Assembly: GCA_022605425.2 (NCBI GenBank) | Contig: CM061248.1 | Coordinates: forward strand, 124,001-188,000 | Direction of reading: 5' to 3' | Source of the DNA: Hamiltosporidium tvaerminnensis FI-OER-3-3 | Lineage: Eukaryota > Fungi > Microsporidia | DNA length: 64,000 bases | Part shown: piece after piece, positions 25,550-43,766 of the stretch | Numbering within the stretch: position 1 is the stretch's first letter | Layout of the letters: every line of letters starts with the position of its first letter | Notes under the pieces: generated by a model | Told to the model about the DNA's origin: nothing | Database searches by the model: none | What the model saw: only the letters and a program-made list of their open reading frames with translations | Made by a program: the position numbers and the translations under genes

Positions 25550-26284
25550 GATTTACTTTATTTAAAAATATCACATCTTTTTACAATAGTGGCAAGTGTT
25601 ATATTTGTTTTCATGACATTAATGCAGTTCTAGGTTTAACATAAATGACTGCTACCCCAACACTCCATCGGTAACCCCTGCGATACCTACGTCCCAAAGC
25701 CTTTCATCTACCAGGTGTGTAGAACCTAATTAATAGGCGAGGCAGTTGCCCGGAGTTCGTTAATGTCTGTTGCATGGAGTGTGATCGAAGGCCGAAGCCC
25801 ACCCTGGGCTCCCCCAAGACTATGCAGCATTCCCACTTACTCTACACTTTCCGAACCCAATAAACTTCTAGCTAAGATATATTTCAGAGATTTACATGGG
25901 GTCCACCTAGACAGTGCAATGTCATACCAACAGGTATAACCTGCTACTTAGCTCTCCCGGCTTTTAATGGGTTTTATTTTTATATCTCCCAGGCGCTAAG
26001 TCTTCTAACCCGAGTGAGCAAGGCTAGGTTTCCATGCTTTTACATGGCGATTACCTACATGTTCAGCTGCGGTCTGCAATCTGGTTACATAAAAAACTAC
26101 AAATAAATTCGTAGAAAAAGTTTCACCATTTCTTAGACCTCTCCTCCTCATAACAACTCCCATGGAACAACCGAAGATGTAGTGTGGTTGTATTCCCGCC
26201 AAAAATCCAAACAATGATCTCACACCAGTTTCACACACTCATTGCCAAGCAGAAAGTTTTTTATGTGGTTATCCTCCCTCCACC
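25550..26284 (-). mobile_element. SINE-like family A, full length (~735 bp)
   Basis: Highly similar to 43984-44724; no credible ORF; 14-bp TSD TTTTTTTACAAAAT at 25536-25549 and 26285-26298. Confidence 0.88.
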
Positions 26285-26723
26285 TTTTTTTACAAAATAA
26301 TTAATAGAGAAATATAAAATATGAATTTATTTATTCTTATAAAAGATAAGCAAAGTTAAATATCAGAAAGCCGAGAAAATATTGAGAAATTCTGGATAAG
26401 TAAAGTCTTATTTATAGATGTAGTGTAGAGATAATTCCTTATGTGATAAAAAAAAAGTATGATATTGTGTATGCTCATTATATTTAAATTCACCAAATAC
26501 TAGATAAAATAGAGGCATACATACAGTCAAGAGTACTTAAAAAGATTAATTAATTTTTAATAAAAACTCAGACAGAATCCTTGTCAAAAATTATATGAAA
26601 TTGCAATAAATAGGTTATATAAACCACTCAACACATCTCATACTCTCTAGCACACATTACTGAAGTATAAACTAGACCTTTATATAGCTTATATGAACCA
26701 ATTAAGTATTTTTAAATCAAAAT

Positions 26724-27097
26724 GGAAGGACTTTATTTAAAAGTATCACATCTTTTTTAAACAATGGCAAGTGTTATAATTGTTTTCATGATAGTAACGC
26801 AGTTCTAGGTTTAACATAAATGACTGCTACCCCAAAACTCCATCGGTAACCCCTGCGATACCTACGTCCCAAAGCCTTTCATTTACCAGGTGTGTAGAAC
26901 CTAATTGCTAGATGAGGCAGTTGCCCGGAGTTCGTTAATGTCCGTTGCATGGAGTGTGATCGAGGGCCGAAGCCCCCTGAGCTCCCATAAGACTATGCAA
27001 GATTCCCACTTACTCTACACTTCCTGAAACCAACAAACTTCTAGCTAAGATATATTTCAGAGACTTACATGAGGTCAGCCTAGATAGTGGAATGTCA
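26724..27097 (-). mobile_element. SINE-like family A, 5'-truncated
   Basis: Matches the 3' half of 25550-26284; 11-bp TSD TAAATCAAAAT at 26713-26723 and 27098-27108. Confidence 0.88.
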
Positions 27098-27737
27098 TAA
27101 ATCAAAATAATAATATTAAATAAAAATATAGGCTTTATAATCATAAAAGGGATAAATTTACAATGAAATCACAAATCAAATCTTTTATCTCTCATAAAAA
27201 ATGCTTTTAATTAATTCAATTACTTACAAACGTATAAACTAGAAAAGTTTTATTGTTGAAAATAGATTCACTCAAGAAAATGTATTTTATAGATTTACTA
27301 TTTTACCAGAAAAAAATGTAGAGATAATCTCACATCATATACTAAGAATACTTATAACCAGATTTAATAGTCACTACATACCACAAATTTTTTTCAACCA
27401 AAACACAAAATAAATATAAATTTCTTCATTCTTTATCACAAGATTTATTCTAATACCATATACTATGTGACCAAAAATAAAAAAAAATAAAATTCTTTTA
27501 AAATAAATGAAATACTTACACTTTTTATCACAAATTTTATTATTTATAATATATTGGTATATTCAACCAAAAATAAATACAAAATCTATATTTACTTATT
27601 ATTAGTTATATTTAATTAAAAGTACTTATAATTACACAATTTTCTTATATTTTCTACTACTTCATATATTTTCTTATATCCTCCTTCCCCCTTTAGTTAC
27701 CACTTACCTACTTCATTTCCATATAAATAATTACTGT

Positions 27738-27751
27738 AAACCCCATTAATG
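27738..27751 (+). promoter_or_regulatory. Microsporidian CCC motif before the start codon (representative; also at RAD14, BIM1, RPA2, DCP1, Sir2, LSM3, THOC1-like)
   Basis: AAACCCCATTAATG; others GACCCATTTTAAATG, GTCCCTTAAAAAACAATG, AACCCCTCATAAAATG, TACCCCAATG, AACCCTTAGAAATG, CACCCCTCAGAATG, GACCCATG. Confidence 0.8.
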
Positions 27752-29486
27752 TCACAACAAGTCCTCATAGAATTTTACGACACACAAAACAACAAAATAC
27801 GTGACAAACTACACGTACCACTCTCAATAACAAGAAAACACCTTCTTTCTCTTCTAAACCAACCAACACCTTCAAATTTATATCTTAACGATCAAGAAAT
27901 ACGCACAACGTTACAGGACGTAACCGACAGTCAAAAAATATGTTTAGAACAAATTCTAAAAATAAAAATTTTACCGTCCACCGACACACTTCCCATCCAA
28001 ACAACACACTGTTCCTCGTCGTATTCTGGGCATGAGTCACCTGTTCTGTGCATTAAATACAGCACATGCGGCGCATATATTTACAGTGGTGGTGGTGACT
28101 GTACACTCCGTGTCTGGCACGCACTAACCAAGACACAAGTAAAAGTTAATAAGCACCATACACACTGGGTACTCTGTATAGACTGTAGCATATACACTGT
28201 CGTCTCTGGCGACATGTCCGGCACAATATGCACGTACACCGTAACAGGCGACTTCATACACACCCACCAAATCCACAAAAACGCCATCACCGCACTTATT
28301 CTCCACCACGACCGTATATACACATCTTCTCGTGACAAAACAGTCAAAATATCCACACTCACGGGTACAATACTCTACTCATACACACATACACAACCAG
28401 TCACCTGTATAGCTCTAAATCCCTATTTCTTCATCTCCGGTTCCACAGATAAGTCACTTAAAATTTATACACATCACTATAAACACCTCAAAACACTCAC
28501 AAACCATAAAAATCGTATTAATTGTATTTTTTTAAATAATAAGTTTATACTTACAACCAGTGATGACCACACAGCACACCTCTACCACATCGAAGGATTA
28601 GAAAATACTAATTTTGAGAAATTGGATAATAAGTTAGAAAATAATTTGGATGGTAATAAAGAGGGTGTTAATGATAAGGAAGTAGAAGAGTGTGTTATTA
28701 ACAGTACTAATAAACAACATAGTGATATTAACGAGTTTGGTGAACAACAGGGTGATATTAAGGAGTCTAATACCAGTACTAATAAACAACAGGGTGTTAG
28801 TAATCTATCTAACAACACTACTAATAAACAACACCCTCTTAACAACAGTACTAGATAAACAACAGGGTGTTAGTAATCTATCTAACAACACTACTAATAA
28901 ACAACACCCTCTTAACAACAGTATAGATAAACAACAGGGTGTTAATAATGTATCTAATATAAGTATTGATAAACAACACCCTCTTAATACCAGTATAGAT
29001 AAACAACAGGGTGTTAATAATCTATCTAACAACAGTATTAATAAACAACACCCTCTTAACAACAGTATAGACAAACAACAGGGTGTTAGTAATCTATCTA
29101 ACAACACTACTAATAAACAACACCCTCTTATAACCATTACCTCTTCCTTTATAACATTAAACCACAATAGTATAATAACAACAGCCAGTATAAGTCCCAA
29201 CAACACAATAATAGCCACCGGTTCATTCGATAAAAAAGTAAAAATATGGAACACCACTGGTACTTTAATATCTGAATATTTACATTTAAACAGTATTTAT
29301 AAAGTACATTGTACCAACACATCTATCATCTCAGCTTCTAAAGATGGTATAATTAAGATATACAGTTATTATAATAAAAGTATTGTTAATGAGTTTATAT
29401 GTAAAAATGAAATATATTGTTTTGACATATACAACTCACAACTTGTATGTGGATGTAAAGACAAGAAGGTGTACTTCTTTATATAG
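27749..29486 (+). CDS. RSA4: Ribosome assembly WD40 protein Rsa4/Notchless with ~180-aa repeat insertion and a 1-bp frameshift at ~28851
   Basis: NLE domain (VPLSIT...LL.LLNQ, LEQILKI), CSSSYSGH, SGGGDCTLRVW, HWVL, SPNNTIIATGSFDKKVKIW, final GCKDKKVYF; ORFs 27749-28858 and 28692-29486 overlap within the repeat. Confidence 0.87.
28592..29135. repeat. Coding hairpin-motif repeat array inside RSA4
   Basis: ~72-bp units AAACAACAGGGTGTTAGTAATCTATCTAACAACACTACTAATAAACAACACCCTCTTAACAACAGTATAGAT. Confidence 0.9.
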
Positions 29487-29799
29487 GAGGAGGATTTTAG
29501 GGGATGTATTTAGGAAGAGGAGTGATAGAGAAAAGAGTGATAGAATAAGGGAGTAATAGAATAGGGGAGTAATAGAAGTATTATAAAGTATTTTTTTTCT
29601 ATTATATTTATTAATTAAATTATTTTTTTTCTATTATATTTATTAATTAAATTATTTTTTATTTCTAATAATATATATTAATTAAATTAAATCTCTAATA
29701 AAATATTAAATTAATTATTTTTTATTAATTCTTAAATATCTATTATTCTATTAATTAAACCCTTATTATATCTATTAAATCTTTAAAATAAATAATTTA

Positions 29800-30170
29800 A
29801 TAAATATAACCTCTTAAACATAAGTACTAATACTTATGATCTTGTAAATAACAATATTAGAAAATAACACATCTTAACTATCACTTCTAATATGTAACAC
29901 CTCTTAGACATAAGTACTAGTAAACAACACCTCTTAGACATAAGTACTAATACCTATCACCCTGTTAATAACTCTACTAGTAAACAACACCTCTTAAACA
30001 TATGTACTATACTTATCACCCTGTTAATAACGCTACTAGTAAACAACACCTCTTAAACATATGTACTATACTTATCACCCTGTTAATAACAATACTAGAA
30101 AATAACACCTCTTAACCATTACTTCATATAAATAACAACCCTATCACATTACTCTAATAAATAACCTTTT
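29800..30170. repeat. Intergenic array of the same motif family (~59-60 bp units)
   Basis: AACACCTCTTA(A/G)ACATA(A/T)GTACTA..TACTTATCACCCTGTTAATAAC..TACTAGTAAAC repeated between convergent RSA4 and RPA2. Confidence 0.85.
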
Positions 30171-30171
30171 A

Positions 30172-33100
30172 TCACATCACTTCTATCTTAACACGTATAT
30201 TCATTGCCATTAACTCACTACACAAATACTTAAAAACATAAGGCATCTTAACACCTCTATAACTACCACTACCACACTCACATACACCACCACATACAAA
30301 CATAACACTCTTACAAACACAACACCATAAAAACTCAGTACCATCACTACACTTCATACTTCTATCATTTAACAGGTAAGACACTCCATGTCCTATAAGT
30401 GCATCTCTTTCCATTTCTCCTAATCTTATACCACCCATTCTTTTTCTACCTCCTACTGGTTGTCTTGTCTGTGATTGTACAGGTCCTATACTACGTACTT
30501 GGTATTTGTCACTTACCATATGTCTTAGTCTTTGATAATATACTACTCCTGTATATACATCACTCTTAAACATTCTACCACTTATACCTGAATACATACA
30601 TTCAGTACCATAATAGTTATAACCATACTTTACCAGTAAATTACCAAAGAAGTCAATGGCAGAGGTATTAGTCGTATGGTTAGTAGGGTGATAAGTATTA
30701 GCACAGTTATTAACACCCTTATAATTATTAGTACTGTTATTAACACCCTTATAATTATTGGTACTCTTATTAACACCCTGTTGTTTATCTATACTGTTAT
30801 TAACACCCTTATAACTACTAGTACTGTTATTAAGACCCTGTTGTTTATCTATACTGTTATTAAGACCCTGTTGTTCAATTGTACTGTTATTAACACCCTT
30901 ATAACTACTAGTACTGTTATTAAGACCCTGTTGTTTATCGATACTGTTATTAAGACCCTCTAAACTACTATCCTTATCACTAACACCCTCTAGCATATCA
31001 CCACCTAACACATCACTACCTAACATATCACTACCACACACTATATCACTCCACCCTTTAAATGCTGTACCATCCTCTATCTTTCCTCTAAGACACCCAC
31101 TCTTACCACTAAGACTCTCAATAAACATACCAATACTCATTCTACTAGGAAATGCATGTGGATTAATAATAAGATCAGGACATTCTCCATTCTCCATAAA
31201 CACCATATCACTACTTTCATATAAATAAGAACAAACACCTTTTTGTCCATGTCTACTACAAAACTTATCCCCTATATATGGATTACGTTGTATACGTAGT
31301 GTTATCACTGCTCCTTTAGAATATACTCTTATGTTACTAACAATACTTTTCTCTGTATTTTTATAAAAATATTGTTTATCTGTAAAATAATACTCACAGC
31401 CATAATATAACACCTGACCAACCAAAGGAAGTTTAACACTAGAAAAGCAATTATTAACACTATTGTTATTGTTATCTGACTTACCATCCCTACTACCATC
31501 TAACCTACTATCCCTACTACTCTCCCTAATGATATTATCAAATTCTATTATCTCGTTCTTATATATAAAACCATTAAATAATCCCCTTTCTATACTTCCT
31601 TTATTAAGTACCATAGCATCTTCCATATCATAACCTGTATAACTTAAAACACTAACCATACAATTAACACCTGTTGGATAATCACTAAGAATATATTTTT
31701 TATAAAATTTAGTTTGTACGATTGGTGTTTGGTTATATGTTATTTCATATAATTTGGAATCTGATCTGTCGTTTATGTTGTAACACCCCCATCCCATAGA
31801 TTGTTTAGCCATTTGGCATTGGTACATGTTACGAGGTGATTGGTTAAAGTCTGAGAAGGGTGTTAGTGCAGCTGTAAGTGAAAGGAAATAAGAGGGGTCT
31901 AATTCAGAGTAGAGAAAGGTGTTATTTGAGGTGGAGGTAATAGGGTTATAATTATAGGTAGTAATAGTAGTATTGTTAACAGGGTTATAATTATTAGTAG
32001 TATTACTGGTGATATTAACAGGGTTATAATTATTAGTAGTATTACTAAGACCCTGTTGTTTATAAGTAGTATTAGTAGTGTGGTTAAGACCCTGTTGTTT
32101 ATTATCCATATTACTAAGACCCTGTTGTTTACTATCCATATCAATAACACCCCTATAATCATCTATACTGTTACTAACACCCTCCTCCTTATCAATATAA
32201 TCATTTCTACATAACTCTATGTCTAAGTAGGGTTGTTCCATAATACCTATAAATTCTGGTTTACCTATTATTTTATTATAAATAGGTCTTATAAATCTAT
32301 TAGGTGTTGTACATATATTAATAAGGTTATTTGTATTTAAAGGGTAACATACTATTTCAAATGATAAGTTATTAAGACATCTGTATGTTCTAAGAGTATC
32401 TGTAAGTTTAAAAGGTGTTAAAGTATAACCTATTACTTTACCGTCAAGGGATATAAAGTATGGGGTGTTATATAGATTATTGGGTTTAGAGGGGTGTTGT
32501 TTATTAAGGTTAGTGTTAACAGGGTGTTGTTTATTAGATAGGTTGTTAACAGGATGTAAGGTATTAGTAGTGTCACTAACACCCTTAATATTATCTATAT
32601 TGTTACTAACACCCTTTATATCACTATCCTTATCACTAACACCCTCTACCTCCCTAGTATCACTAACACCCTCTATCATCATATCCTTATCACCCAAAAG
32701 ACACTCTATTGGTATAACACCCATACCATACAAAACACTGTCACTAAGACTTTCTGTCTCTCCAATTCTACATTCCATACAAAGATGCATAATAAGACCA
32801 CATGGTGATCCATCAGGAGTATGTACAGGACACATAAACCCCCAACTTTCTGCTTTTAACTTTCTAACTGTTGTAGTCTTAAGTGTACTAAAAAATGCTC
32901 CTCTGTTTATGCTACGGAAATATGATAAATATCGCATAAAATTTATATTTTCTGCATAAACACTAAAACCACTGCTTTGCATTATATCTGACGCATAAAC
33001 AAACTTTGCATTTCCTGTGCTTAAAAATTTTTCTATTTTAAGACCTATGTTAGTGTCTACCTTATTTAACACCCATCTTAACACTTCATCTATACTTTTA

Positions 33101-34743
33101 CCACCAAGGGTCTTAGCATAAGGATTAGTATTTTTAACAGGGTGTTGTTTACTAGTACTAATATTAACAGAGGGTTGTTTACTTGTACTGTTGTTAACAG
33201 GGTGTTGTTTACTAGTACTGTTGTTAACAGGGTGTTGTTTACTAGTACTAATATTAACACCCTCTAATATATCTCTACTATCACTAACACCCTCTACCTC
33301 CTTACTGTTCTTAACACCCTCTAATATATCCCTACTGTTACTACTCTTACCACCTATCTTACTAACCATATAACTAACACCCCTTAACATCTCTTCTAAC
33401 TTCTCTCTTACTAAACTACATAACATATTACTAACACCTAACACTTCATGATTAGCATAACAATCAGGATCTTCACTTTCTAAAGATCCACTTACCAACA
33501 TAAATAACTTTCTAATACCTAACAATAAGAAATACTCTTTATGTATAACACTCTCTACATGTGTACATATTATAGATATTAGTGTTTTAAAAGGTATACG
33601 TGTGTCTCTTTCTAACACCTCTTTACAAACATCAGTAGAGTAACAGGTATCACTTAATAGGAATTGATTAACAAGTTTAGTAAAGGTGTTATTAATAAAG
33701 GGGTGATGGGTATTGTTATTAACAGGGTGATAGTTGGTATTGTTATTAACAGGGTGATAGTTGGTATTGTTATTAACACCCCTATAATTACTATCCTTGT
33801 CATTAACACCCCCTACTCCCTCTATATCACTATCACCCTCTAATACACTATCTCTATCACTAACACCCCCTACTCCCTCTATATCACTAACACCCCCTAC
33901 CCCCTCTATATCACCCCCTTTATTCCCTGTACAGATAAAAGTGTACATATCTTTATCCGTATAAGAGGTTAATGCTCTAAGTAGTATAATAACAGGTATT
34001 CTAATTTCATTTCTATTAAAATAAAAACGAGCTGTAACCCCTCCATCTCTCTGATAATGTAGTGTTAGTGTATGTCCTATCTCATTATAAACAGTACGTG
34101 TTGTAACAGAGAAGGGTGTAAATAAAGGAGATTTCTTTTTGTGTGTTGGTTTTGTATAAGCAAACCAGTAATTCCTCTTTGGTGCTATTAATAGTCTTAC
34201 AACCTTTTGATGGCCATTTATTATAAAATAGCCACCTGGGGATACAAAAATTGAGTTATTTTTATTATTATTGGTATTAGATATAGTGTTAGTACTATTA
34301 GAGTTAGATTTATTATCAATCTTACTACCCTTAATACCCTTAGTATCTAACTTATTACCCTTAGTATCTATTTTATTACCTGTTGTGTTGCATAGTACTG
34401 ATCCTATCATGATAGGAAGATTACCACATTCGAGTTGGTGTGTACGTGTGGTGTTGTTATATGTTAAAGTATATTCAATGGTAATTCTACCTTTATATGT
34501 AATATTTCTGTGTGTACATTCGTAGGGAAACAATTTAATACCAGAATGTAAATATTCTGTGTCTGAGAGATGTGGTTTGTGTAATTTAAATGATGTAAAT
34601 TTTAGGTGGATTTGTGTGGTGTTGTATGTTAGTTGTAGTGGTGGTAGTTGTGATATTATGGCTGGTAGTGTTGATATGAAGGTGTTGTATGATGATATGT
34701 GGGGATAGAAGAGTGATTTTAGTTTTTTGTAATCTTTTTGCAT
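30172..34743 (-). CDS. RPA2: RNA polymerase I second-largest subunit (Rpa135/RPA2) with seven low-complexity in-frame insertions
   Basis: GGYFIING, RGAFF..LKTTTVRKL..ESWGFMCPVHTPDGSPCGL, FNQSPRNMYQCQMAKQ, SYTGYDMEDAM, GDKF.SRHGQKG, QRLRHMVSDKYQVRS, GGIRLGEMERD; Pol I-type residues. Confidence 0.96.
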   Translation of the reverse strand: MQKDYKKLKSLFYPHISSYNTFISTLPAIISQLPPLQLTYNTTQIHLKFTSFKLHKPHLSDTEYLHSGIKLFPYECTHRNITYKGRITIEYTLTYNNTTRTHQLECGNLPIMIGSVLCNTTGNKIDTKGNKLDTKGIKGSKIDNKSNSNSTNTISNTNNNKNNSIFVSPGGYFIINGHQKVVRLLIAPKRNYWFAYTKPTHKKKSPLFTPFSVTTRTVYNEIGHTLTLHYQRDGGVTARFYFNRNEIRIPVIILLRALTSYTDKDMYTFICTGNKGGDIEGVGGVSDIEGVGGVSDRDSVLEGDSDIEGVGGVNDKDSNYRGVNNNTNYHPVNNNTNYHPVNNNTHHPFINNTFTKLVNQFLLSDTCYSTDVCKEVLERDTRIPFKTLISIICTHVESVIHKEYFLLLGIRKLFMLVSGSLESEDPDCYANHEVLGVSNMLCSLVREKLEEMLRGVSYMVSKIGGKSSNSRDILEGVKNSKEVEGVSDSRDILEGVNISTSKQHPVNNSTSKQHPVNNSTSKQPSVNISTSKQHPVKNTNPYAKTLGGKSIDEVLRWVLNKVDTNIGLKIEKFLSTGNAKFVYASDIMQSSGFSVYAENINFMRYLSYFRSINRGAFFSTLKTTTVRKLKAESWGFMCPVHTPDGSPCGLIMHLCMECRIGETESLSDSVLYGMGVIPIECLLGDKDMMIEGVSDTREVEGVSDKDSDIKGVSNNIDNIKGVSDTTNTLHPVNNLSNKQHPVNTNLNKQHPSKPNNLYNTPYFISLDGKVIGYTLTPFKLTDTLRTYRCLNNLSFEIVCYPLNTNNLINICTTPNRFIRPIYNKIIGKPEFIGIMEQPYLDIELCRNDYIDKEEGVSNSIDDYRGVIDMDSKQQGLSNMDNKQQGLNHTTNTTYKQQGLSNTTNNYNPVNITSNTTNNYNPVNNTTITTYNYNPITSTSNNTFLYSELDPSYFLSLTAALTPFSDFNQSPRNMYQCQMAKQSMGWGCYNINDRSDSKLYEITYNQTPIVQTKFYKKYILSDYPTGVNCMVSVLSYTGYDMEDAMVLNKGSIERGLFNGFIYKNEIIEFDNIIRESSRDSRLDGSRDGKSDNNNNSVNNCFSSVKLPLVGQVLYYGCEYYFTDKQYFYKNTEKSIVSNIRVYSKGAVITLRIQRNPYIGDKFCSRHGQKGVCSYLYESSDMVFMENGECPDLIINPHAFPSRMSIGMFIESLSGKSGCLRGKIEDGTAFKGWSDIVCGSDMLGSDVLGGDMLEGVSDKDSSLEGLNNSIDKQQGLNNSTSSYKGVNNSTIEQQGLNNSIDKQQGLNNSTSSYKGVNNSIDKQQGVNKSTNNYKGVNNSTNNYKGVNNCANTYHPTNHTTNTSAIDFFGNLLVKYGYNYYGTECMYSGISGRMFKSDVYTGVVYYQRLRHMVSDKYQVRSIGPVQSQTRQPVGGRKRMGGIRLGEMERDALIGHGVSYLLNDRSMKCSDGTEFLWCCVCKSVMFVCGGVCECGSGSYRGVKMPYVFKYLCSELMAMNIRVKIEVM

Positions 34744-35204
34744 TTTATGAGGGGTTTAAATATGTTAAATAAAACGGTTGTGGAGTGATTTTTTGTGGTT
34801 TTTATTTTAGAGTGGATTTGGGGTGTAAATGATAAGAGTAGTCGATTGTGGGGGTCGTATAGTAGTGGTAAGAAGGTGTTGTCTAGCAATATGTTATATA
34901 GTAGTGGTTAGTAGCAATATATAAGAAAGTGGTAAGATATAAATAGTAGTAAGAAGATATGGGTAGGAATATAGTACGAAATTTAGTAGTTAAAGAGTGT
35001 TAGAATTAATAGAAAACGGATTGAATACATACGAAAATTTATAATGCAAACTTGTTCTTCGGTTGTAATCATAAACGGGATGTAAAAAGTGTTTGTATCT
35101 TCATTGAATTGAATTATAAAGAGGTGTATATAGTGTTGTGTTGCCGAGTGAACATATTATGTGGTAATTGTTGGATCGTTTGGAAAAAGTAAAGAAATAT
35201 CAAC

Positions 35205-36330
35205 TTAAAATGTCGCCATACTAAAGGCAGAGAATACTAATAAAACCCATCTTGCACTAATAAAAAGCTTCTTAAAAGTAATAAATAGGTTGGAAGAAAG
35301 AGCTACCAACAAAAAATTGGAAAAGGTCTGAATTACTAAGTTATATAACGAAATAGAAACCCAAAACTACATTAGAAACTATAAATGTGAGTTTGTACGG
35401 GACCCTTCTTGTGGTTAAGAAAGAGAATAATTGGTTACAAGATAAAGTAGTGTGCTGTTATATCTGTACAGAGTTATTCTGGGAAGCAGAAGATATGTAT
35501 CAACACTGTGATGCGCCTGGTGATAGTATGGCTTGTTCAACTACTCGATTCGAGGAAAGATTCGTGTATAAATGTGTCAAGTAGCACATTTAAAATGAAT
35601 GCTTACACTCAATCTTTCATATAAATAAAAATTTTGGTATTTTAAACAAATTTTTAGTTACATTTCATGAAATTATGGAAAAGGATATATTTAAATAATA
35701 TCAAACTTTAGAACAAAAAACATTGTTGAGATTTGTAAATTATATCTTAAATTTTTATTTAATATACGAGTTAAAGTGTGATAGCACTTATTTTATTAGG
35801 AATGGTTTCATATGATTCACTTCGGATACTTGCGCCAGATAACTTGGGAAGTATGATCTATGGGTCAAAACCTTGGGTCGTATTTATAGGTATAGGATTG
35901 AAACGATTTTTTATGTAATAAAGAAGAGCAAATCATAACAATTATGGTAAAAAATAGGTCACAGTATTGCAGATATCCATAAATGCAGTAGTATATTAGT
36001 CTATAATAACCTGTAGGACGGCCAAAACGATTTATTTTGATCGATAGAGAATATTTGAATCAGCAAAAAATGCCGAATTGTGCTGGTTAAGAAGATCTAC
36101 GTATACTATTGTGAAATCTAAGAGCTATGAGGAACCAACACCCTTTTCAAAGCAAGCAAGCATCTAGAAATACGATGTTTAACATATAAAAACAAATAAT
36201 AACCTACTCTTTATTATAATATGACGAAACATGGTTAAGTAACCTACAATAACTAACTATAAACAAAGAATTGAATAAAAAAAAGAAATATTGGGGTGTT
36301 AATAGGTATAAGAAAGTATAAAAGAGTAAA
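35205..36330 (+). pseudogene. Highly decayed remnants of the RLE non-LTR element 3' half
   Basis: CATCTTGCACTAATAAAA.GCTTCTTAAAAGTA (HLALIKxFLKV), GGAAGTATGATCT (RKYDL) and TTTGATCGA match the element. Confidence 0.6.
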
Positions 36331-36433
36331 AAACTTTTTTTACTCAGATTTAAATTGATATAATATAATTCTAATGTTAATATACATATATAATCAAATG
36401 TTTACAAAGAATCAAAAATAGAAAAATCTTTAC

Positions 36434-38113
36434 TTATTTTCTGAGAATATAGAATATCACTCCACACACAGTTCCTATAACAGTTAATATAATCAGTACA
36501 CAAATTAAATCTGGTAAATTGAATTTTTTATTTGAACTTGATGCGTTGACTGTTATATGTCGAGTTAAATCAAGTTCCTTAAATACCAAATAAATAATGT
36601 AATCATTCATTGCATCCGAAGAATCATTAAACCGAATTATATTCTTCTCATCAAGAAACTTTCGAATTTTCAACTCTAAGAATCGCTTAGATGAATAATC
36701 TAGGAAAAATATTGTTACAAGCATCAATTTTATATCAATAAAAGCCTTCATAATTCTTTTTCCTACCAAAATACTATCATTTCGATCTAAATTATACCTG
36801 ATTTGAAAATTTTCCAATGTTTTTCTTATATTGTTATTTATGGTTTGAACTTGATGTAGAACTTTACTTTCGATATTATTTTCTACATATACTTGTGATA
36901 CAATATCAACCAAAAATATTATTTCAAATATAATTCTAAGATATGCTTCAAATGAAATATTTTTAGGTATTAGACATGAAGATTTTATACAAACCAAAAT
37001 CTTGATGTATTCGTGATATTTTATGTCAATTATTTCTGCTAAGAATTTATAAACAGAAATTATTTTGTTAAATTGATCGTTTGCTACAAATAAAACTAAT
37101 ATATATTCTGGAAAAAACAAGTCCGGTTGATTAAAATAACAGTCTGGTCTTTCTTTTGCAAATCTAAAAACCTTTTCGAATATATTGACGTCGCTTGATA
37201 ATCTCTTGAACGTTCGATCAAATATATGATTATAGAGAATTTCTTGACACTGCAAATCAAATTGAGTAATTAATTCTTGAGGAAACCATAGAGATGTCTT
37301 TACTAAATTTTGGTATAAATCATCATCTAAGGTAAAATTATAAACGAAGAAAGGCTGCTCCAGAGTATATGTATTATTCTTGAACAGCAAATGATATTTA
37401 AGCGTGATTATCAACGAAAAGAGTCTCTCAAATGAGCTTTTTGAAACATGGTCTAGGATTTTTTTATTTATGCTATCATCTCTTGAATTAGCTAGCACGA
37501 ATCTATCTAATTTACTTTCATAAAGAACTCGATTCATACTTTTAAATTTTATTGATTCGTTAAATATGATCCTAAAAAGGTCTTTTTGCTCCTCAACTGT
37601 ATATTCTGTTCTAAATATACCCGAGGTTATCTTATTGATTTCAACATTGATTAAGCCTTCTTCCATAGCAGCTAGAAAATCGTAAAATATAAGATTACTT
37701 TTACATAATTCATAGAGTTTACAAGCCGCTAATATATTAAAAAGGAATTCTATATTACACGTTATTCCCTCTCCTTCATTGCGATTCGATTTAGAGCCAT
37801 GACCAAGTAAACTACAAAGAATGCAAGTATAATATAATATAAAACCGTGCATATTCTGATCAAAATATTTGTACACTTTTCTAATATAAAATTCAACTTT
37901 TGGTATAACACGTTCGTAATATTCATTGGAACAATAAGGAGTTATTTTTTGCAATACATCACTTACATTCGTATCATATTCGCATTCACACTGGACAGAC
38001 AGGTTATTTATATCAGATACTAAAGGATCCACTAATAAAGCATCGAAAATGTAATTCCCCGTAGCATTTACCACATAATAGTAAAGAAACATGCAAAAAA
38101 TAATTAAATTCAA
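36434..38113 (-). CDS. Hypothetical protein with N-terminal hydrophobic leader and C-terminal TM helix (type I membrane/surface protein)
   Basis: 559-codon ORF; C-terminal LICVLIILTVIGTVCGVIFYIL-RK; start uncertain (TTG at 38113, first ATG at 38092). Confidence 0.72.
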   Translation of the reverse strand: MNLIIFCMFLYYYVVNATGNYIFDALLVDPLVSDINNLSVQCECEYDTNVSDVLQKITPYCSNEYYERVIPKVEFYIRKVYKYFDQNMHGFILYYTCILCSLLGHGSKSNRNEGEGITCNIEFLFNILAACKLYELCKSNLIFYDFLAAMEEGLINVEINKITSGIFRTEYTVEEQKDLFRIIFNESIKFKSMNRVLYESKLDRFVLANSRDDSINKKILDHVSKSSFERLFSLIITLKYHLLFKNNTYTLEQPFFVYNFTLDDDLYQNLVKTSLWFPQELITQFDLQCQEILYNHIFDRTFKRLSSDVNIFEKVFRFAKERPDCYFNQPDLFFPEYILVLFVANDQFNKIISVYKFLAEIIDIKYHEYIKILVCIKSSCLIPKNISFEAYLRIIFEIIFLVDIVSQVYVENNIESKVLHQVQTINNNIRKTLENFQIRYNLDRNDSILVGKRIMKAFIDIKLMLVTIFFLDYSSKRFLELKIRKFLDEKNIIRFNDSSDAMNDYIIYLVFKELDLTRHITVNASSSNKKFNLPDLICVLIILTVIGTVCGVIFYILRK

Positions 38114-38779
38114 TATATATATAATTTATTTTTTTCTTAATATGATAAAATTGATAAAAATATCAATTATCGTTAAAACTATTTGATAAAAATATTTTTC
38201 GGTTGTTTCTTAATTAATTTTTTATTAATCAAATCATTATATTCTACAGTGCTCATAGAACCATTAATTTGTCTTTTATCAAATTCTAAGAAAGTTTGTA
38301 ATTTTTTAGTATTTTATAACAACTAAACCTTTCCATATTTTTGGCCTCTTTTGAATTTGATTCTGGCGAAAAGTAAAATCTACCAGCCACAAACCTGCTA
38401 AATCGAATTGTGTCTTTATAAAATTTGAGTTTTATGTTTTTTTTGGCAAAAACGAATGTTCAGCGAGAAAATAATTTTTTTGTGGTAATTAAAGGTTATT
38501 ATTTTGAGCATATTTTAAACTAAAAGAAATTGAAACTTATTTAAAAAAAGTAAAAAAGTAAAATTAAAAAAATTATACGAAAAAAAATTGTTAAAAAGAA
38601 CAAAAACATAAAAAAAAATTTTAATCATTATGTTTAATCATAGTTCTATGATATATTTGGTTTCTCCTATCCTTTTTATTTTTTCTACAAATATGCCCAC
38701 TCTTTTGTATTATAAAGGATAATATAAAACTTCAAAAGTAAAGAAAATAGATTTAAATATTGAAATGAATAATCATTTT

Positions 38780-39330
38780 CTAGGATTCAATTCAAATAGT
38801 TGAATCTAAAAATCTTAGAAGTATGACCATCTAGCTAATGAGTTATGTCTTGTTTATAATCGTAATGTTGAGATAGTCCTTTATGTGATAAAATCTGATT
38901 GGAGTGTGGCAAAATAAAATAAACACACCCAAAAATGACGGCAAATACTCCATAATATAAAGGCATAGATTCCTTGAAATACTTACGAAGACGGTCGAAA
39001 CATTTTCTCAGATCGACGAAGAAGACTTAAGCTGAGAAAAAATGCTGAAGAGAGCTAAAAAGGTGCGTCAATGGGTGGTATAAAGAGATCTGGGATGCAT
39101 AAGGAAACAAACCCACCTTTAAAACAAGCCAGCAACGACAATAATTGTGCTAAACATGCTAAAACTAAAAATTATAGACCCTTTTTCAGAAGGAGGACCT
39201 CGTTAGATGAACCGACCATAAACATAAATGATGAGTCAAATTTAGAAGACGAAAGATGTTAGTAAAAGAGGTAAAAGAAAATATAAAAATAAGTGAAAAT
39301 CGAGTTAACTCAAAAATCTTTTAAATAAAA
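38780..39330 (+). pseudogene. Decayed 3' fragment of the RLE non-LTR element
   Basis: TTCAAATAGTTGAA.CT.AAAA.CTTAG.AAGTATGACC.CTAGCTAATGAGTTA, GATCGACGAAGA.GACTT and GAACCGACC match 43220-43760. Confidence 0.8.
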
Positions 39331-39904
39331 GAAATATTTCTAAGTTACTAAAAAGCCTTTTAAATTATAAGGTTTAGCAAAACACCTTTTTTTCTGGTTT
39401 TATTTACATGCTTTTATCTCGAGTTATGCAATTTAACAAGGGAATGCACTGGAGAACAACGAGTGAAGAATAAAATAATTTCAAAATTTATGTAAATTTC
39501 TATGAAGAAATTCTTTCAATGCCGATCAAATAGAATAAGAGAATCTTATTTAAATTGAAAAGGTTTTAAATTTAAATGCGAAAACATTGGTTCAGGAGTG
39601 ACAATGTCATTTTATAACAGCTTTTATATTTTTGGAAGAGAACGCAGAAAAAAACGACATTTGTATCATAAATGAAAATCTTTTTGACATAATTTTATTC
39701 CTTTATTGCTATATTAAGCTGGTATATATCGAAATAGAAAAGAAAAATAAAATTGTTCTAAATTACAAACCAAATTAATAATAATTCCTTTTTTTTCTCG
39801 ATCGGAATAATAAATTTTAAGCTTTTATTTCTAAAAGCTCAAATTTTTTATTTTAATATAATGATTTCTATTTTAATTTTTAAGATAAAACTTTATTTTT
39901 AAAC

Positions 39905-40950
39905 CAAAGCCATGAAAGAATTTAGTATTCCTCCTAAATTGATTAGATTAACTAAAGTGACAATGTCTGGATCGAATTGCAGAATCGGAGTAAAGTCGAC
40001 TCTATCAGAACAAGTTAAAATCATTAAATGATCTAAAGCAGGATGACGTACTGGCGTGTCAACTATTTAATTTGTCTCTAGAAAAAGTAGTCCGTGATTC
40101 AGGTCTGCAGATTGTAGGTCACATATTTAACGAGCAAATTCAAATCCTAGTACACCTGATTATATTGACCTTATTGCAAGATCAGAAGCTAGTCTACAAA
40201 GAGCGTTCATAGCCTTGGAATCTGCAGCCAAGAAAATGGGCCTGATTATTAACATCTGAAAGACCAAATATATTACATTATGTAATGGCCGAAGACCCCC
40301 ACAATTCCAAGTCTGGTATTATATCTTTGAAACAGTAGAAGATATTGTTTATTAGAAACCCGAATAGACGTAAACAACAGCTTTTCTATAGAAATTGAAA
40401 GAAGAATTCGGCGGCCAACAAGTGCCACTATAGTCTCTTTGAACACTTTAAGTCCAAGCTCATCTCTAGGAAGAAAAAAGTCATGCTCTATGAAACGCTG
40501 CTGAGACCTATTCTTATGTATAGGTCAGAATTTTCAGTTTTGAAGAATATTGATGAGCAGAGAGTAGCGGTGTTCGAAAGAAAAGTAATGAGACGTATTT
40601 ATGGATCTAAAGAAGAAAATGGCAGGTGGAGGAAACGCCACAACAGGGAATTCTACACCGAATTGAGGAATATGTCAGTATTAGACTTAATCTGCCTGAA
40701 CAGACACCGTTGGGTAGGACATCTGCTAAGAATAAGACAACATCGCATACCTTCCAAGGTTTTGAACCCTATACCAGTCTAAAAATGGAAAGTGGGAAGG
40801 CCCAAGACTCGCTGAATTGATCAAATCGAAATGACCGGCCGATTTATGAGATTAGAAGACTGGTGGAAGGTTGCGCTAGAAAGAAACCGGTAGGCGACAT
40901 TGCTGAGGGAGGCCAAGGCTCATGCAGGGATGTAGTTAGGATGATAAAAA
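39905..40950 (+). mobile_element. RTE-clade non-LTR retrotransposon, 3' fragment (pseudogene)
   Basis: AMKEFSIPPKLIRL, LKQDDVLACQLFNL.LEKVVR, IDLIARS, MGLIIN..KTKY, LYETLLRPILMY, FERKVMRRIYG, RWVGH, GRPKTR; stops and frameshifts present. Confidence 0.88.
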
Positions 40951-41420
40951 AATATTTTTTGTATTGCTAGTGCAATAGAAAGTTGAAAGTTTGTTAAATA
41001 TATATAATTTGTAAGGATTTTTTCTATTTTTTTAATCTACCAATTTCAAGTCTGTAAAAAACTGTACAAATATGAAAATCTACTGATTGGAAAAGTGCTT
41101 CATTAAATTCCCTTTTGTAACAAACACAGCATATTTTACCCTTCACTTACTTGTTAATAGAATTAATTAGCTTAAAAAATAGCATTGTTTAAATTTTTCA
41201 TTATGTAACCTTTGAGAAGCAATTTTGTTCTTTTGATATTCTGGAGGCACTATCCCTAGTAAACATATAATTTTCATATCAAAATTATTTATACGTAAGT
41301 TTGTAATTCTTTTCATTAATTCATTCTCTTATCAGCCAATCCACTCTTTTAACATTATTTTTTTCTGTTTTAATTTTCCTTTAAATTTTTTGCAAATAAA
41401 AATAATTCTTAATTACCCCA

Positions 41421-42021
41421 ATGAATGATGAACTCAAAAAAAATATATTAAAGTCGGTTCTAAATAAGAAAGATAAATTATTTCTAGAAATTATTTTTAG
41501 CGCAGAATATTGCGCAATTTACAATTTTAAAAATGATAAATGGGAAGATGTAAACGTAGAAGGTTCATTACATTTATATCAAAGAAAATCCAATCTACAA
41601 AAAGCTTATATATGTGTTCAATAGAAAAGGACGAAATGATATCTTATTAAATATAGAAAATGGATGTAGTTACTGTTTACAAGATAGTTTTGTCATATTT
41701 AAAGATTACCATTACAATTTTACAGGTATTTGGTTCAGTAAAATAGAAGAAGCAAAAAATTTCTGTGAAAATATAAAAATAATTTCCAACGAAAATAAAA
41801 TTTCTACAACAGATTCTGAATGTAAATTGTATTGCCCAGATGATGTAAGTATTAGAGACAATCATTCATTTAATAGTGAAACATTTCAATCTATATCCTG
41901 CGATAATATTTATTTTGATGAATCAAACTCTTCCAAAAATTTTTGTATCTATGAAAATTCAAGCGATAAAAATGATGTCTTAGAAAGTGAAAGTGTCCTG
42001 ACTCATGGATCAAAAACGTAA
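41421..42021 (+). CDS. DCP1: mRNA decapping subunit Dcp1 (EVH1 domain), frameshifted at ~41595
   Basis: AEYCAIYNF...KWEDVNVEGSLHLYQR, then in the next frame LIYVFNRKG...GIWF...E; CCCC immediately before ATG. Confidence 0.8.
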
Positions 42022-42092
42022 TATTATATTAATGTACAGTAAATGTAATTTATAGTTTCTTCTAAAAGTTAATTCTACAATAAATTCTAACA

Positions 42093-42123
42093 AATTTTAA
42101 CCCAGAATTTTATTAAATAAAAT
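42093..42123 (+). mobile_element. Minimal 3'-end remnant of the RLE element
   Basis: ATTTTAACCCAGAATTTTATTAAATAAAA identical to the element 3' terminus. Confidence 0.6.
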
Positions 42124-42688
42124 ATTCTCTTTTTTAATTTGGAATTCCATTGAATATAAATTTTATGGCTTTTTTGAATCTTAATTTAACTTCTATTCTA
42201 ATTTTAAATGTTTTTTTATAAATATTTTGATTGGTATTTCTATCTTAAAAAAATAAAGAATCTATCAAATTATTATTTTAAAAACTATATTTAATAAAAT
42301 TTTGATATCATAAGCAAATATAGAATATTTTTTTTAGTTCTGTAACTCACATTCCTCAATCAATTACTTTATATTTTTAATTCAAAGTAAAAGAAAATTA
42401 TATTTAAACACAAACTGAGCAGTTATAAGTTCTTTGGTATTAAATTAAATACTTTTATTTTACTAAATTATGGTCTTTGCATATTCAAAATATCTGAAAT
42501 ATGGATTGTTTTTAAATTATTTTAAAACTTTAAATTTAAACTTATTTTTTTTATAAATTAAAAGTTGAGTTACAAAATTTAATAAAGTCTTTAGTAAAAT
42601 TCATAAAAATACTTTGAAATTAAGAGAATGTATAAGAAATTAGAAATTAATAGATAAATTATTTTAAATACTTTTATTAAAGCTTTTG

Positions 42689-43766
42689 AGAAGCTCAACT
42701 TGCAAAACTATATAACGAAATAGGAAAACGAAAACTCCATTCAAAGTTATATAATACAACGAAAAATGAGGTTGTAAGTGTTAGTGCCTCTTCAAGATGG
42801 CTAAAGAGAGGAAATATTAGGCCACGAAATGAAGCTGTGTTCTGCTATATCCAGGATAGAAATGTATTCTGGGGAGCAGATGGTGTGTGTCAACATTGCG
42901 GGAAGTCTGGTAAGACTGTAGATCATCTAGTAATTAGATGTGATAAAATGCTAGGCGATGATTACACTAGACGGCATAATGAAGTGGTTAGATGCCTACA
43001 CCTACTTCTTATAAATAGATATAAGTTTAAGTCTTCAAAACGAATAAGGAGTCACTCAGTTCAAGAAATTCTTGATAATGAGTATGCAGAGATAAGAGTG
43101 GACACCAGAATTAGAAAATGATGTTAAAATTCGGAATAACAGACCGGACATATTTATTTTAGATAAGAAGAAGAATAAGATAACACTCATTGAAGTAGGA
43201 ATCACTTCCCAAGATTCACTTCAAATAGTTGAAACTGAAAAACTTAGGAAGTATGACCTGCTAGCTAATGAGTTAGGTCTTATTTATAAGTGTAGTGTTG
43301 AGATAATCCCTTATGTGATGACCTGGGACGGTATTGTGACAAAATACCATAAATCTTATCTTAAAAGACTAGAAATACCCATGAATGTAGAGGCATACAT
43401 TCAGTCTATAGTACTTAAGAAAACAGTCGAAACAATTTCCTTTGATCGACGAAGAGGACTTGAGTCAGGACTAAATGCCGAAGAGAGCTGGGAGAGAGCG
43501 TCAATGGGTGTTATTATGAGATCAGAGATGCATGAGGAACCAATACCCCCTTTAAAAGAAGCGAAAAGAGAGGAAGATGGTGTTAAAACTTTTAAAACCA
43601 AAAAATAATACACCCCTTATTTCACAAGGAGGAACCACTTTGGAGGAACCGACCAATAACATAAATGAAGAGTCGGATTTGGAAGAAGAGACAAAAGTGG
43701 TTAAAGAGGTATAGAAAACATATAAAAATGGTAAAAATATTTTAACCCAGAATTTTATTAAATATG
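42689..43766 (+). mobile_element. 5'-truncated copy of the RLE non-LTR retrotransposon (zinc knuckle, endonuclease, 3' end)
   Basis: Highly similar to reverse complement of 17912-18990; CQHC...H...C, RRHN, RPD; 12-bp TSD TTAAAGCTTTTG at 42677-42688 and 43767-43778. Confidence 0.92.

Follow-up and report, generated by a model that had tools for sequence, protein, structure and literature searches.

Introduction

Microsporidia are the standard textbook example of how proteins and genomes shrink. Among the described systems that come close to the one reported here, the palindromic elements of Rickettsia are discrete, about 100-150 bp long and possess defined ends, and many of them are intergenic. 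The low-complexity Asn-rich inserts in housekeeping proteins of Plasmodium falciparum, RNA polymerase subunits among them, consist of simple codon repeats alike in composition, not in sequence. For the microsporidian genus Hamiltosporidium itself, Asn-rich in-frame expansions splitting MCM motifs have been mentioned, and inteins and tolerated expansions were not distinguished (Haag et al., 2019; PMC6944219). The present study deals with in-frame inserts in two essential genes of Hamiltosporidium tvaerminnensis FI-OER-3-3, RPA2 (coding for the second-largest subunit of RNA polymerase I, Pol I) and RSA4 (Notchless), which lie in a stretch of 64,000 nucleotides (C3:124001-188000, hereafter the window; positions refer to the window unless another sequence is named) of a genome of 21.64 Mb in 17 contigs. 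The database proteins closest to those encoded in the window are from H. tvaerminnensis.

The inserts are probably translated in-frame tandem-repeat tracts, i.e., coding minisatellites, that belong to a single dispersed family confined to Hamiltosporidium. The uniform order of their units, in which G-type units precede C-type units, is the main new result of this analysis. A first-pass annotation, made from the sequence of the window alone, had described quasi-palindromic insertions and had proposed for them a self-propagating micro-repeat or a repair-insertion process filtered by selection for frame and surface loops; the polarity of the inserts it had missed.

Results

Inserts in RPA2 and RSA4

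The RPA2 frame stays open for 1523 codons, as had been stated in the first-pass annotation, and the protein deposited from the same contig comprises the full 1523 residues, unspliced. Among solved structures, the open reading frame (ORF) matches 7aoc_B best (E 3e-186), Pol I RPA2/A135 matches range from about E 1e-179 to 1e-186, and Pol I second subunits outscore those of Pol III and Pol II by a wide margin. Microsporidian RPA2 orthologues consist of 985-1197 residues and are insert-free. Alignment to orthologues delimits seven in-frame inserts of 46, 80, 86, 78, 95, 27, and 129 residues (541 in sum), placing them within a few bases of where they had been annotated. All seven lengths in nucleotides are multiples of 3. 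The pooled inserts are rich in Asn, Ser, Gly, Thr, Asp, Lys, and Val; each insert is free of stops in the gene frame as compared with 1-7 and 12-47 stops in the other two sense frames, and of 2000 shuffles of the pooled sequence none stays open.

Five of the RPA2 inserts, the RSA4 insert, and an intergenic array between both genes are built from a common unit of about 30 nt with the core AACA-GGG/CCC-TGTT. Tandem Repeats Finder (TRF) detects periods of 27, 30, 39, 57, 60, and 90 in the RPA2 inserts and of 72 in RSA4, with matches of 77-100%. Inserts 1 and 6 of RPA2, which had already been singled out as less regular, consist of other units (Table 1).

Orthologues of RSA4, which carry Notchless/NLE1 names, comprise 389-407 residues. 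The RSA4 insert is missing from all of them and falls precisely at a junction of two propeller blades that measures 2-3 residues in orthologues. It begins with three G units, followed by a 72-bp segment made of one G-type and one C-type half (TRF match 91%) that is amplified about five times. In an AlphaFold2 model, residues 290-460 show a predicted local distance difference test (pLDDT) score of about 30 and no secondary structure, with blades scoring above 90, and the insert is predicted to form a disordered inter-blade loop. For RSA4, this model fits the earlier proposal that the inserts occupy surface loops. As regards RPA2, the inserts are seen only to separate blocks that can be aligned with solved Pol I structures, and a model of its last 579 residues (mean pLDDT 44) was too poor to judge the exposure of inserts 6 and 7.

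A dispersed family of repeat units

In the window, the 11-mer AACA[GGG/CCC]TGTT occurs 10 times, always within 28788-33236, compared with a chance expectation of about 0.08, and 8-mers are clustered like the 11-mer. Genome-wide, a 16-mer core with at most one mismatch yields 809 matches as opposed to 6 for the reversed control, with a typical spacing of 30 bp; among the matches listed, contigs C1-C4 are represented. The DNA vocabulary recognized in the first-pass annotation is thus shared, and the motif, whose absence from the rest of the genome would have spoken against that annotation, is dispersed.

A six-frame genome search with the peptide of RPA2 insert 7 gives at least 149 matches (150 of 469 candidates scored), distributed over all 17 contigs. 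These lie in at least about 77 distinct open frames, some 93% of them in frames of 300 residues or more. When 5.8 billion database proteins were searched with the same peptide, all 27 matching proteins were from H. tvaerminnensis or Hamiltosporidium magnivora. Within 18 fetched loci and the window, 165 of 182 exact cores (91%) are found in stop-free frames of at least 300 residues. Host genes in the fetched loci encode a DEAD helicase, IleRS, two PI3K-like paralogues, an ATR-like kinase, UBP, PRP8, a CPSF_A protein, and VPS13, and the protein search adds SKI2, dynein-like AAA ATPases, Sec7, IKI3, TAF2, a sugar transporter, poly(A) polymerase, DIS3, acetyl-CoA synthetase, and Rpb1 as further hosts. 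Identity is 89-100% between units of one array and 70-85% (about 100 bp compared) for the best matches elsewhere in the genome, and the consensus flanking the core is common to different loci. A search of Rfam found nothing.

Polarity of G-type and C-type units

If units are classified by their in-frame marks (..GGGT.TT for G-type, ..CCCT.TT for C-type), 46 inserts contain both types; 35 of these run G-then-C and 3 C-then-G. Another 37 inserts are G-only and 8 are C-only. A frame-agnostic test, which scored GGGT and ACCC alone, recovers 89 islands with both types, of which 63 are G-then-C, 1 is C-then-G, and 25 are mixed, many of the latter resembling merged neighboring G-then-C inserts. As a G-then-C tract keeps this order when read on the opposite strand, the rule is independent of gene orientation, and the RSA4 insert obeys it as well.

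On coding strands, the cores occur as reverse-complement pairs, namely QGV 106/HPV 48, EGV 41/HPL 21, and QGL 7/DPV 2. Inverted arms made of tandem sub-repeats are present, C-type cores being reverse complements of G-type cores and 63 of 89 islands showing the G-then-C order. The possibility that C-type units arose by a flip of the 3-nt center was discarded, since it predicts more DPV than HPL (2 and 21 observed, respectively). Flanks of G-type and C-type units look alike because the whole unit is a quasi-palindrome. The uniform polarity, together with the reverse-complement relationship, argues for an origin at the DNA level, for which codon slippage alone is insufficient. The designation quasi-palindromic is apt for the unit and for the layout of G-run and C-run, but does not extend consistently to folding of the whole insert. 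Hairpin z-scores of six inserts (-3.85, -3.1, -1.7, -1.1, -0.8, and +1.8) beat those of shuffles in only two cases, and a whole-insert hairpin was rejected as a defining feature due to this inconsistency.

Variation between strains and species

A region of 17.5 kb (25936-43420) was compared with the short-read assembly of another H. tvaerminnensis strain (L049). The five RPA2 indels (90, 39, 21, 18, and 57 bp) are all located within inserts, and of the 25 non-coding indels, 24 are not multiples of 3; most are single bases, and a part of these may reflect consensus errors left in the long-read assembly instead of polymorphisms. In comparison with H. magnivora, indels of 30, 6, 9, 120, and 48 bp are encountered in RPA2 inserts, and among 12 intergenic indels only one has a length divisible by 3. 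In both comparisons taken together, 10 of 10 indels in RPA2 inserts are divisible by 3 versus about 2 of 37 in non-coding DNA, and a single reading phase (QGV or HPV) is used by 154 of 165 coding cores. Selection for frame, as postulated in the first-pass annotation, is borne out by these numbers; insert lengths and insert indels of RPA2 are without exception multiples of 3, whereas few of the non-coding indels are. From this constraint, we infer that the inserts are translated in frame.

Between the two strains, codon changes in the conserved RPA2 blocks are 7 synonymous and 2 non-synonymous (982 codons), and those in the inserts are 7 synonymous and 36 non-synonymous (469 codons; codon positions 17/22/21). 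Divergence from H. magnivora amounts to 0.3% in the RPA2 core, 7.4% in inserts, and 13.9% in intergenic DNA. Variability across 685 units displays neither an excess at third positions nor a 3-periodicity. Judged from these sequence comparisons, amino acid changes in the inserts look neutral and the conserved blocks look constrained. The changes at unit level and between strains suggest that the unit is conserved as DNA, and that the peptide drifts within the limits of an open frame and a hydrophilic composition. The contention that the unit is defined at the DNA level thereby gains support, as it does from the 809 versus 6 core matches.

All eight inserts occupy identical sites in H. tvaerminnensis and H. 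magnivora and differ by whole units, corresponding to 6-40 residues. The number of 24-residue units in the RSA4 insert ranges from 1 to 6 among isolates. In a phospholipase, DIS3, a TOG protein, poly(A) polymerase, acetyl-CoA synthetase, and Sec7, indels span 4-24 residues, mostly about 7, 10, or 20. Of the presence and length polymorphism between isolates that the first-pass annotation had in mind, the latter is found; presence or absence of a whole insert is encountered neither at the 8 inserts nor in six other gene families (two species, 4-5 assemblies). The unit dynamics is minisatellite behavior, not ongoing colonization. An assembly artefact was rejected as the source of the inserts, as five assemblies obtained independently from two species all carry them. 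Two PI3K/PI4K-like paralogues (1831 and 1870 residues; L036:2525-8017 and L037:1911-7520), which derive from a segmental duplication, carry the same four inserts with a two-unit difference in one of them.

Frame breaks within arrays

In the window, RSA4 is split into two ORFs by an extra C inside a repeat unit (Table 1), a break that was overlooked in the first-pass annotation. In other assemblies, RSA4 is a single ORF of 578 and 602 residues (two of H. tvaerminnensis) or of 578 and 486 residues (two of H. magnivora), and all four lack the extra C. The insert claimed for RSA4 is consequently present and in frame in four other Hamiltosporidium assemblies, but broken in the window. The NCBI annotation on this contig gives a truncated RSA4 product of 369 residues. 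Short-read contigs from three DNA runs break at every array and do not bridge position 28851; in the same runs, read depth at inserts is in 10-30-fold excess, which is consistent with many genome copies. The long-read assembly of H. tvaerminnensis combines Oxford Nanopore and PacBio continuous long reads with short-read polishing (PMC10542269). As polishing short reads map to many places in the arrays, and as the additional base is absent from four other assemblies, the frame break is probably a polishing error.

Similarly, a patatin-type phospholipase is represented by two genes in the long-read assembly (248 and 1056 residues; P0173 and P0175), with the break inside a repeat insert, and by one ORF of 1287-1320 residues in four short-read assemblies of two species (P0148, P0174, P0176, and P0177). 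PRP8 (C1:853119-865561; L033:2119-9537 and L034:1-4661) extends over about 12.4 kb in at least six frames in this assembly, and its frame changes occur at or beside arrays. Frame breaks in arrays of the reference long-read assembly, which are probably polishing errors, truncate gene models, RSA4 being annotated with 369 instead of about 578 residues.

Intergenic region and antisense frames

The non-coding array that had been noticed between the genes was located between two convergent stop codons (Table 1). It contains 8-18 stops in each of the six frames, and its strain difference is one 59-bp unit, appearing as 30+29. The segment 29487-29797 is G-rich on the + strand with variable 16-bp repeats and continues with an AT-rich 32-bp repeat, after which the C-type array begins. 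Thus, the whole convergent RSA4-RPA2 intergenic region runs G then C; it can equally be stated that both 3' untranslated regions are G-rich in sense. Two Leu/Cys-rich antisense ORFs run through arrays (28805-29257, - strand, 150 residues; 32465-32959, + strand, 164 residues). They were dismissed as genes, the repeat unit merely being stop-free in one antisense frame.

Table 1. Coordinates of genes, inserts, and repeat arrays in the window and of a second insert family at other loci.
Feature	Position	Strand	Description
RSA4/NLE1 (Notchless)	27749-29486	+	Pfam NLE domain and WD40 propeller; split into ORFs 27749-28858 and 28692-29486
RSA4 insert	28592-29130	+	539 bp, ~180 residues; G-type lead-in units, then ~4.9 copies of a 72-bp (24-residue) unit
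Extra C shifting the RSA4 frame	28851	+	inside repeat unit; stop at 28856-28858
G-rich 16-bp tandem repeat	29535-29577	+	directly past the RSA4 stop; TRF; strain indels 31 to ~60 bp
Non-coding array	29798-30165	+	same family, C-type on + strand; between two convergent stop codons; TRF period 59/30
RPA2, RNA polymerase I second-largest subunit	30172-34743	-	1523-codon ORF; Pfam Rpb2 domains 1-7
RPA2 insert 1	34240-34377	-	46 residues; 21-bp unit without family core; orthologue alignment, TRF, frame analysis
RPA2 insert 2	33688-33927	-	80 residues; G-run (DIEGVGGVSD-type), then C-run (NYHPVNN-type); RNA fold z -3.1; 57-bp indel vs. another strain
RPA2 insert 3	33100-33357	-	86 residues; G-run, then C-run (KQHPVNN, period 30); fold z -1.7; indels 18, 48 bp
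RPA2 insert 4	32464-32697	-	78 residues; G-run, then C-run; fold z -3.85
RPA2 insert 5	31918-32202	-	95 residues; G-run (KQQGLSN), then C-run (NYNPVN, period 39); fold z -1.1; indels 39, 21, 120 bp
RPA2 insert 6	31447-31527	-	27 residues; 12/24-bp unit without family core; indels 6, 9 bp vs. H. magnivora
RPA2 insert 7	30664-31050	-	129 residues; long G-run (periods 30, 60, 90) and single C-type tail unit; fold z +1.8; indels 90, 30 bp
(CCCTAA)2-4 family loci	L034:3281-3670; L031:4260-4500; L046:2683-2947; L047:6900-7190		PRP8, DEAD helicase, UBP, another large ORF

Discussion

The inserts are probably best interpreted as coding minisatellites of one dispersed family. Their basic unit is a quasi-palindrome of about 30 nt around GGG or CCC, and in a typical insert the G-type units come first and the C-type units, their reverse complements, second, which amounts to a foldback or head-to-head layout. 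On this view, the tracts would already have been in place at loop positions of many long housekeeping genes when H. tvaerminnensis and H. magnivora separated, and later changes would be limited to units being gained, lost, or locally re-duplicated by replication slippage or unequal exchange. Selection seems to keep only an open host frame and a hydrophilic peptide, with the amino acid sequence drifting otherwise, and the tracts might persist as disordered surface loops that are tolerated in a parasite with weak purifying selection. Their origin would lie at the DNA level, possibly in an inverted duplication or in the insertion of a palindromic cassette. Candidate routes are a foldback-type cassette or element, the extension of both ends of a break followed by rejoining, and an inverted duplication combined with ectopic conversion. 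The family seems old and fixed in position, and its mode of origin may be new.

Several observations weigh against this interpretation. The annotation of H. tvaerminnensis comprises 3,573 genes with a mean of 1,391 bp in 21.64 Mb (PMC10542269), so that annotated genes cover about 23% of the genome, compared with 91% of cores in long frames. None of the three candidate routes explains this concentration in genes; a trap may contribute, as an array in coding DNA might be removable solely by a precise in-frame deletion. No empty site or insertion polymorphism, which would bear on the mode of origin, was found among the compared assemblies, and copy-number differences derive partly from short-read assemblies, which are able to collapse arrays. 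In view of the inconsistent stability of whole-insert hairpins, a foldback structure need not form physically. Finally, frame breaks in inserts recur in this assembly (RSA4, phospholipase, and PRP8) and, if real, would argue against translation.

It is conceivable, if rather doubtful, that the inserts are scars of a polarity-determining process at the DNA level that acts on transcribed genes or survives in them, either a two-ended telomere-like extension of breaks or a foldback cassette. In its narrower form, in which double-strand breaks were repaired by extending both 3' ends with G-strand telomere-like repeats and rejoining them head to head, with amplification by slippage later on, such an origin seems improbable, although the strand-symmetric G-then-C order (63 versus 1) is the polarity of head-to-head telomere junctions, and hexamer additions keep the reading frame. 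The telomere repeat of the species is TTAGGG (PMC10542269), and a second in-frame family may be regarded as a sister set in PRP8, the DEAD helicase, UBP, and others (Table 1). In its members, a short AT-rich segment containing an ATGCAT palindrome comes after literal (CCCTAA)2-4, and the encoded peptides take the form NPNPN..KCIN; the C-strand lies on the coding strand in 21 cases versus 0 and is in every case preceded by a G-rich part containing TTAGGG-like units. However, literal telomere dimers are absent from RPA2, RSA4, and the window, the 30-nt unit with its one GGG resembles TTAGGG only weakly, and gene preference is left unexplained. The genome-wide count of literal head-to-head telomere pairs, 1 versus 3 in the opposite order, is uninformative. 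Two-ended telomeric addition is not known to have given rise to inserts in coding sequence. An active selfish mobile element, similar to the Rickettsia palindromic elements or to a foldback-type non-autonomous transposon, that is still inserting and of which selection leaves in-frame, stop-free copies, is also an unlikely source. It would be in line with a dispersed family, with inverted arms of tandem sub-repeats of unequal lengths, and with in-frame copies in many essential genes, and a single foldback family would give one polarity in either insertion orientation. Yet no difference in presence or absence was seen at the 8 inserts and 6 gene families compared between two species in 4-5 assemblies, inserts lack a defined length or ends (periods 27-90 bp), and identity between loci reaches 70-85% only. 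The self-propagation proposed in the first-pass annotation, understood as ongoing spread, is hence not sustained, given that inserts reside at the same sites in both species and unit number alone varies. Nor do the data favor its notion of a selfish element filtered by selection, since 91% of cores lie in frames of at least 300 residues, the opposite of what would be expected, and copies are concentrated in ORFs and not in non-coding DNA, which makes up three quarters of the genome.

Non-canonical intervening sequences, removed from RNA as intron-like, self-folding segments or from protein in an intein-like manner, would render frame breaks harmless, and the breaks of RSA4, phospholipase, and PRP8 are indeed all in or next to inserts. 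Some inserts (RPA2 inserts 2 and 4) fold better than shuffles, and ab initio gene finders predicted many introns of about 300 bp (hundreds to thousands of introns, averaging 195-310 bp), which were doubted by the authors themselves (Haag et al., 2019; PMC6944219). This explanation is nevertheless very improbable. Constraint on frame and stops would be needless in removed sequences, the breaks in RSA4 and the phospholipase are absent from four other assemblies, and the Iso-Seq-informed annotation of this assembly supports only short introns, 98 in number with a mean of 28 bp (PMC10542269). Pfam detects no Hint/intein domain in RPA2 or RSA4 but only Rpb2 or WD40/NLE domains, the inserts themselves being low-complexity repeats, and no Rfam family was assigned. 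Introns and inteins were rejected because the inserts are constrained in frame and contain no splicing domain. Hardly credible at all are ordinary low-complexity expansions of the Plasmodium type, which would arise at each locus by independent codon slippage under AT or composition bias, with no homology between loci. Hydrophilic tracts rich in Asn, Ser, Gly, and Thr, situated between conserved blocks and differing in length from isolate to isolate, are what such a process would yield, but an identical 16-mer core (809 matches versus 6 in the control) and a flanking consensus common to loci are not, and neither reverse-complement pairing nor uniform polarity is obtainable from composition alone.

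If the inserts are coding minisatellites, a microsporidian adds hundreds of residues to core machinery such as Pol I, Rsa4, PRP8, tRNA synthetases, and helicases. If they were scars of a polarity-determining process, dozens of core enzymes would have been lengthened by a mechanism undescribed for coding sequence. The family offers a system for studying how junk sequence enters essential genes and persists there under weak selection, how much disordered insertion conserved folds tolerate, and whether a specific repair or mobile-element process seeds inserts. In addition, the arrays are ready-made, highly polymorphic markers for population studies of Daphnia and its parasite H. tvaerminnensis.

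Comparison with known systems

The MCM expansions reported from the same genus (PMC6944219) evidently represent the same phenomenon. That account concerns one gene family, as "data not shown", and contains neither the DNA unit nor a genome-wide family, the polarity, or an isolate comparison. Beyond its one sentence, a literature search found no account of the inserts, which are not discussed in the 2023 assembly paper either (PMC10542269).

With the Rickettsia palindromic elements, the Hamiltosporidium inserts have in common that short palindrome-like repeats are dispersed in a reduced parasite genome and reside in frame in conserved or essential genes at positions where the fold tolerates them. 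In contrast, the inserts described here are tandem arrays with periods of 27-90 bp, 81-540 bp long, that lack defined ends and are found preferentially in genes; in the sample compared, they are not polymorphic for insertion. Foldback (FB) elements likewise consist of two inverted arms of tandem sub-repeats, unequal in length, with little or no central loop, and their unit organization changes from the outer to the inner part. FB elements are mainly non-coding, however, whereas the Hamiltosporidium copies are in frame within genes, and neither a transposase nor a target duplication nor mobility is seen for the latter, an insert-free close relative being needed to define borders. Interstitial telomeric sequences, formed by telomerase break repair or head-to-head fusion, show the same succession of G-strand and C-strand on both strands, and literal CCCTAA runs exist in related inserts of other genes in this genome, but the units of RPA2 and RSA4 are not TTAGGG repeats.

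The P. falciparum inserts resemble those of Hamiltosporidium in belonging to an AT-rich parasite genome and in being hydrophilic, disordered, fast-evolving, variable in length, located between conserved blocks, and without known function. In Hamiltosporidium, by contrast, more than 70 genes share one homologous unit of about 30 nt with a G/C core and a fixed G-then-C layout. Like minisatellite families with a common core, such as the human "core" minisatellites, and like intragenic coding tandem repeats, such as those of yeast cell-wall genes, the arrays are composed of head-to-tail units of 10-100 bp that are gained and lost between individuals, with unit lengths in multiples of 3 in coding sequence and a core common to loci. 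What sets the Hamiltosporidium arrays apart from both groups is that they interrupt the catalytic cores of conserved enzymes, are organized in inverted half-arrays, and appear neutral rather than functionally tuned.

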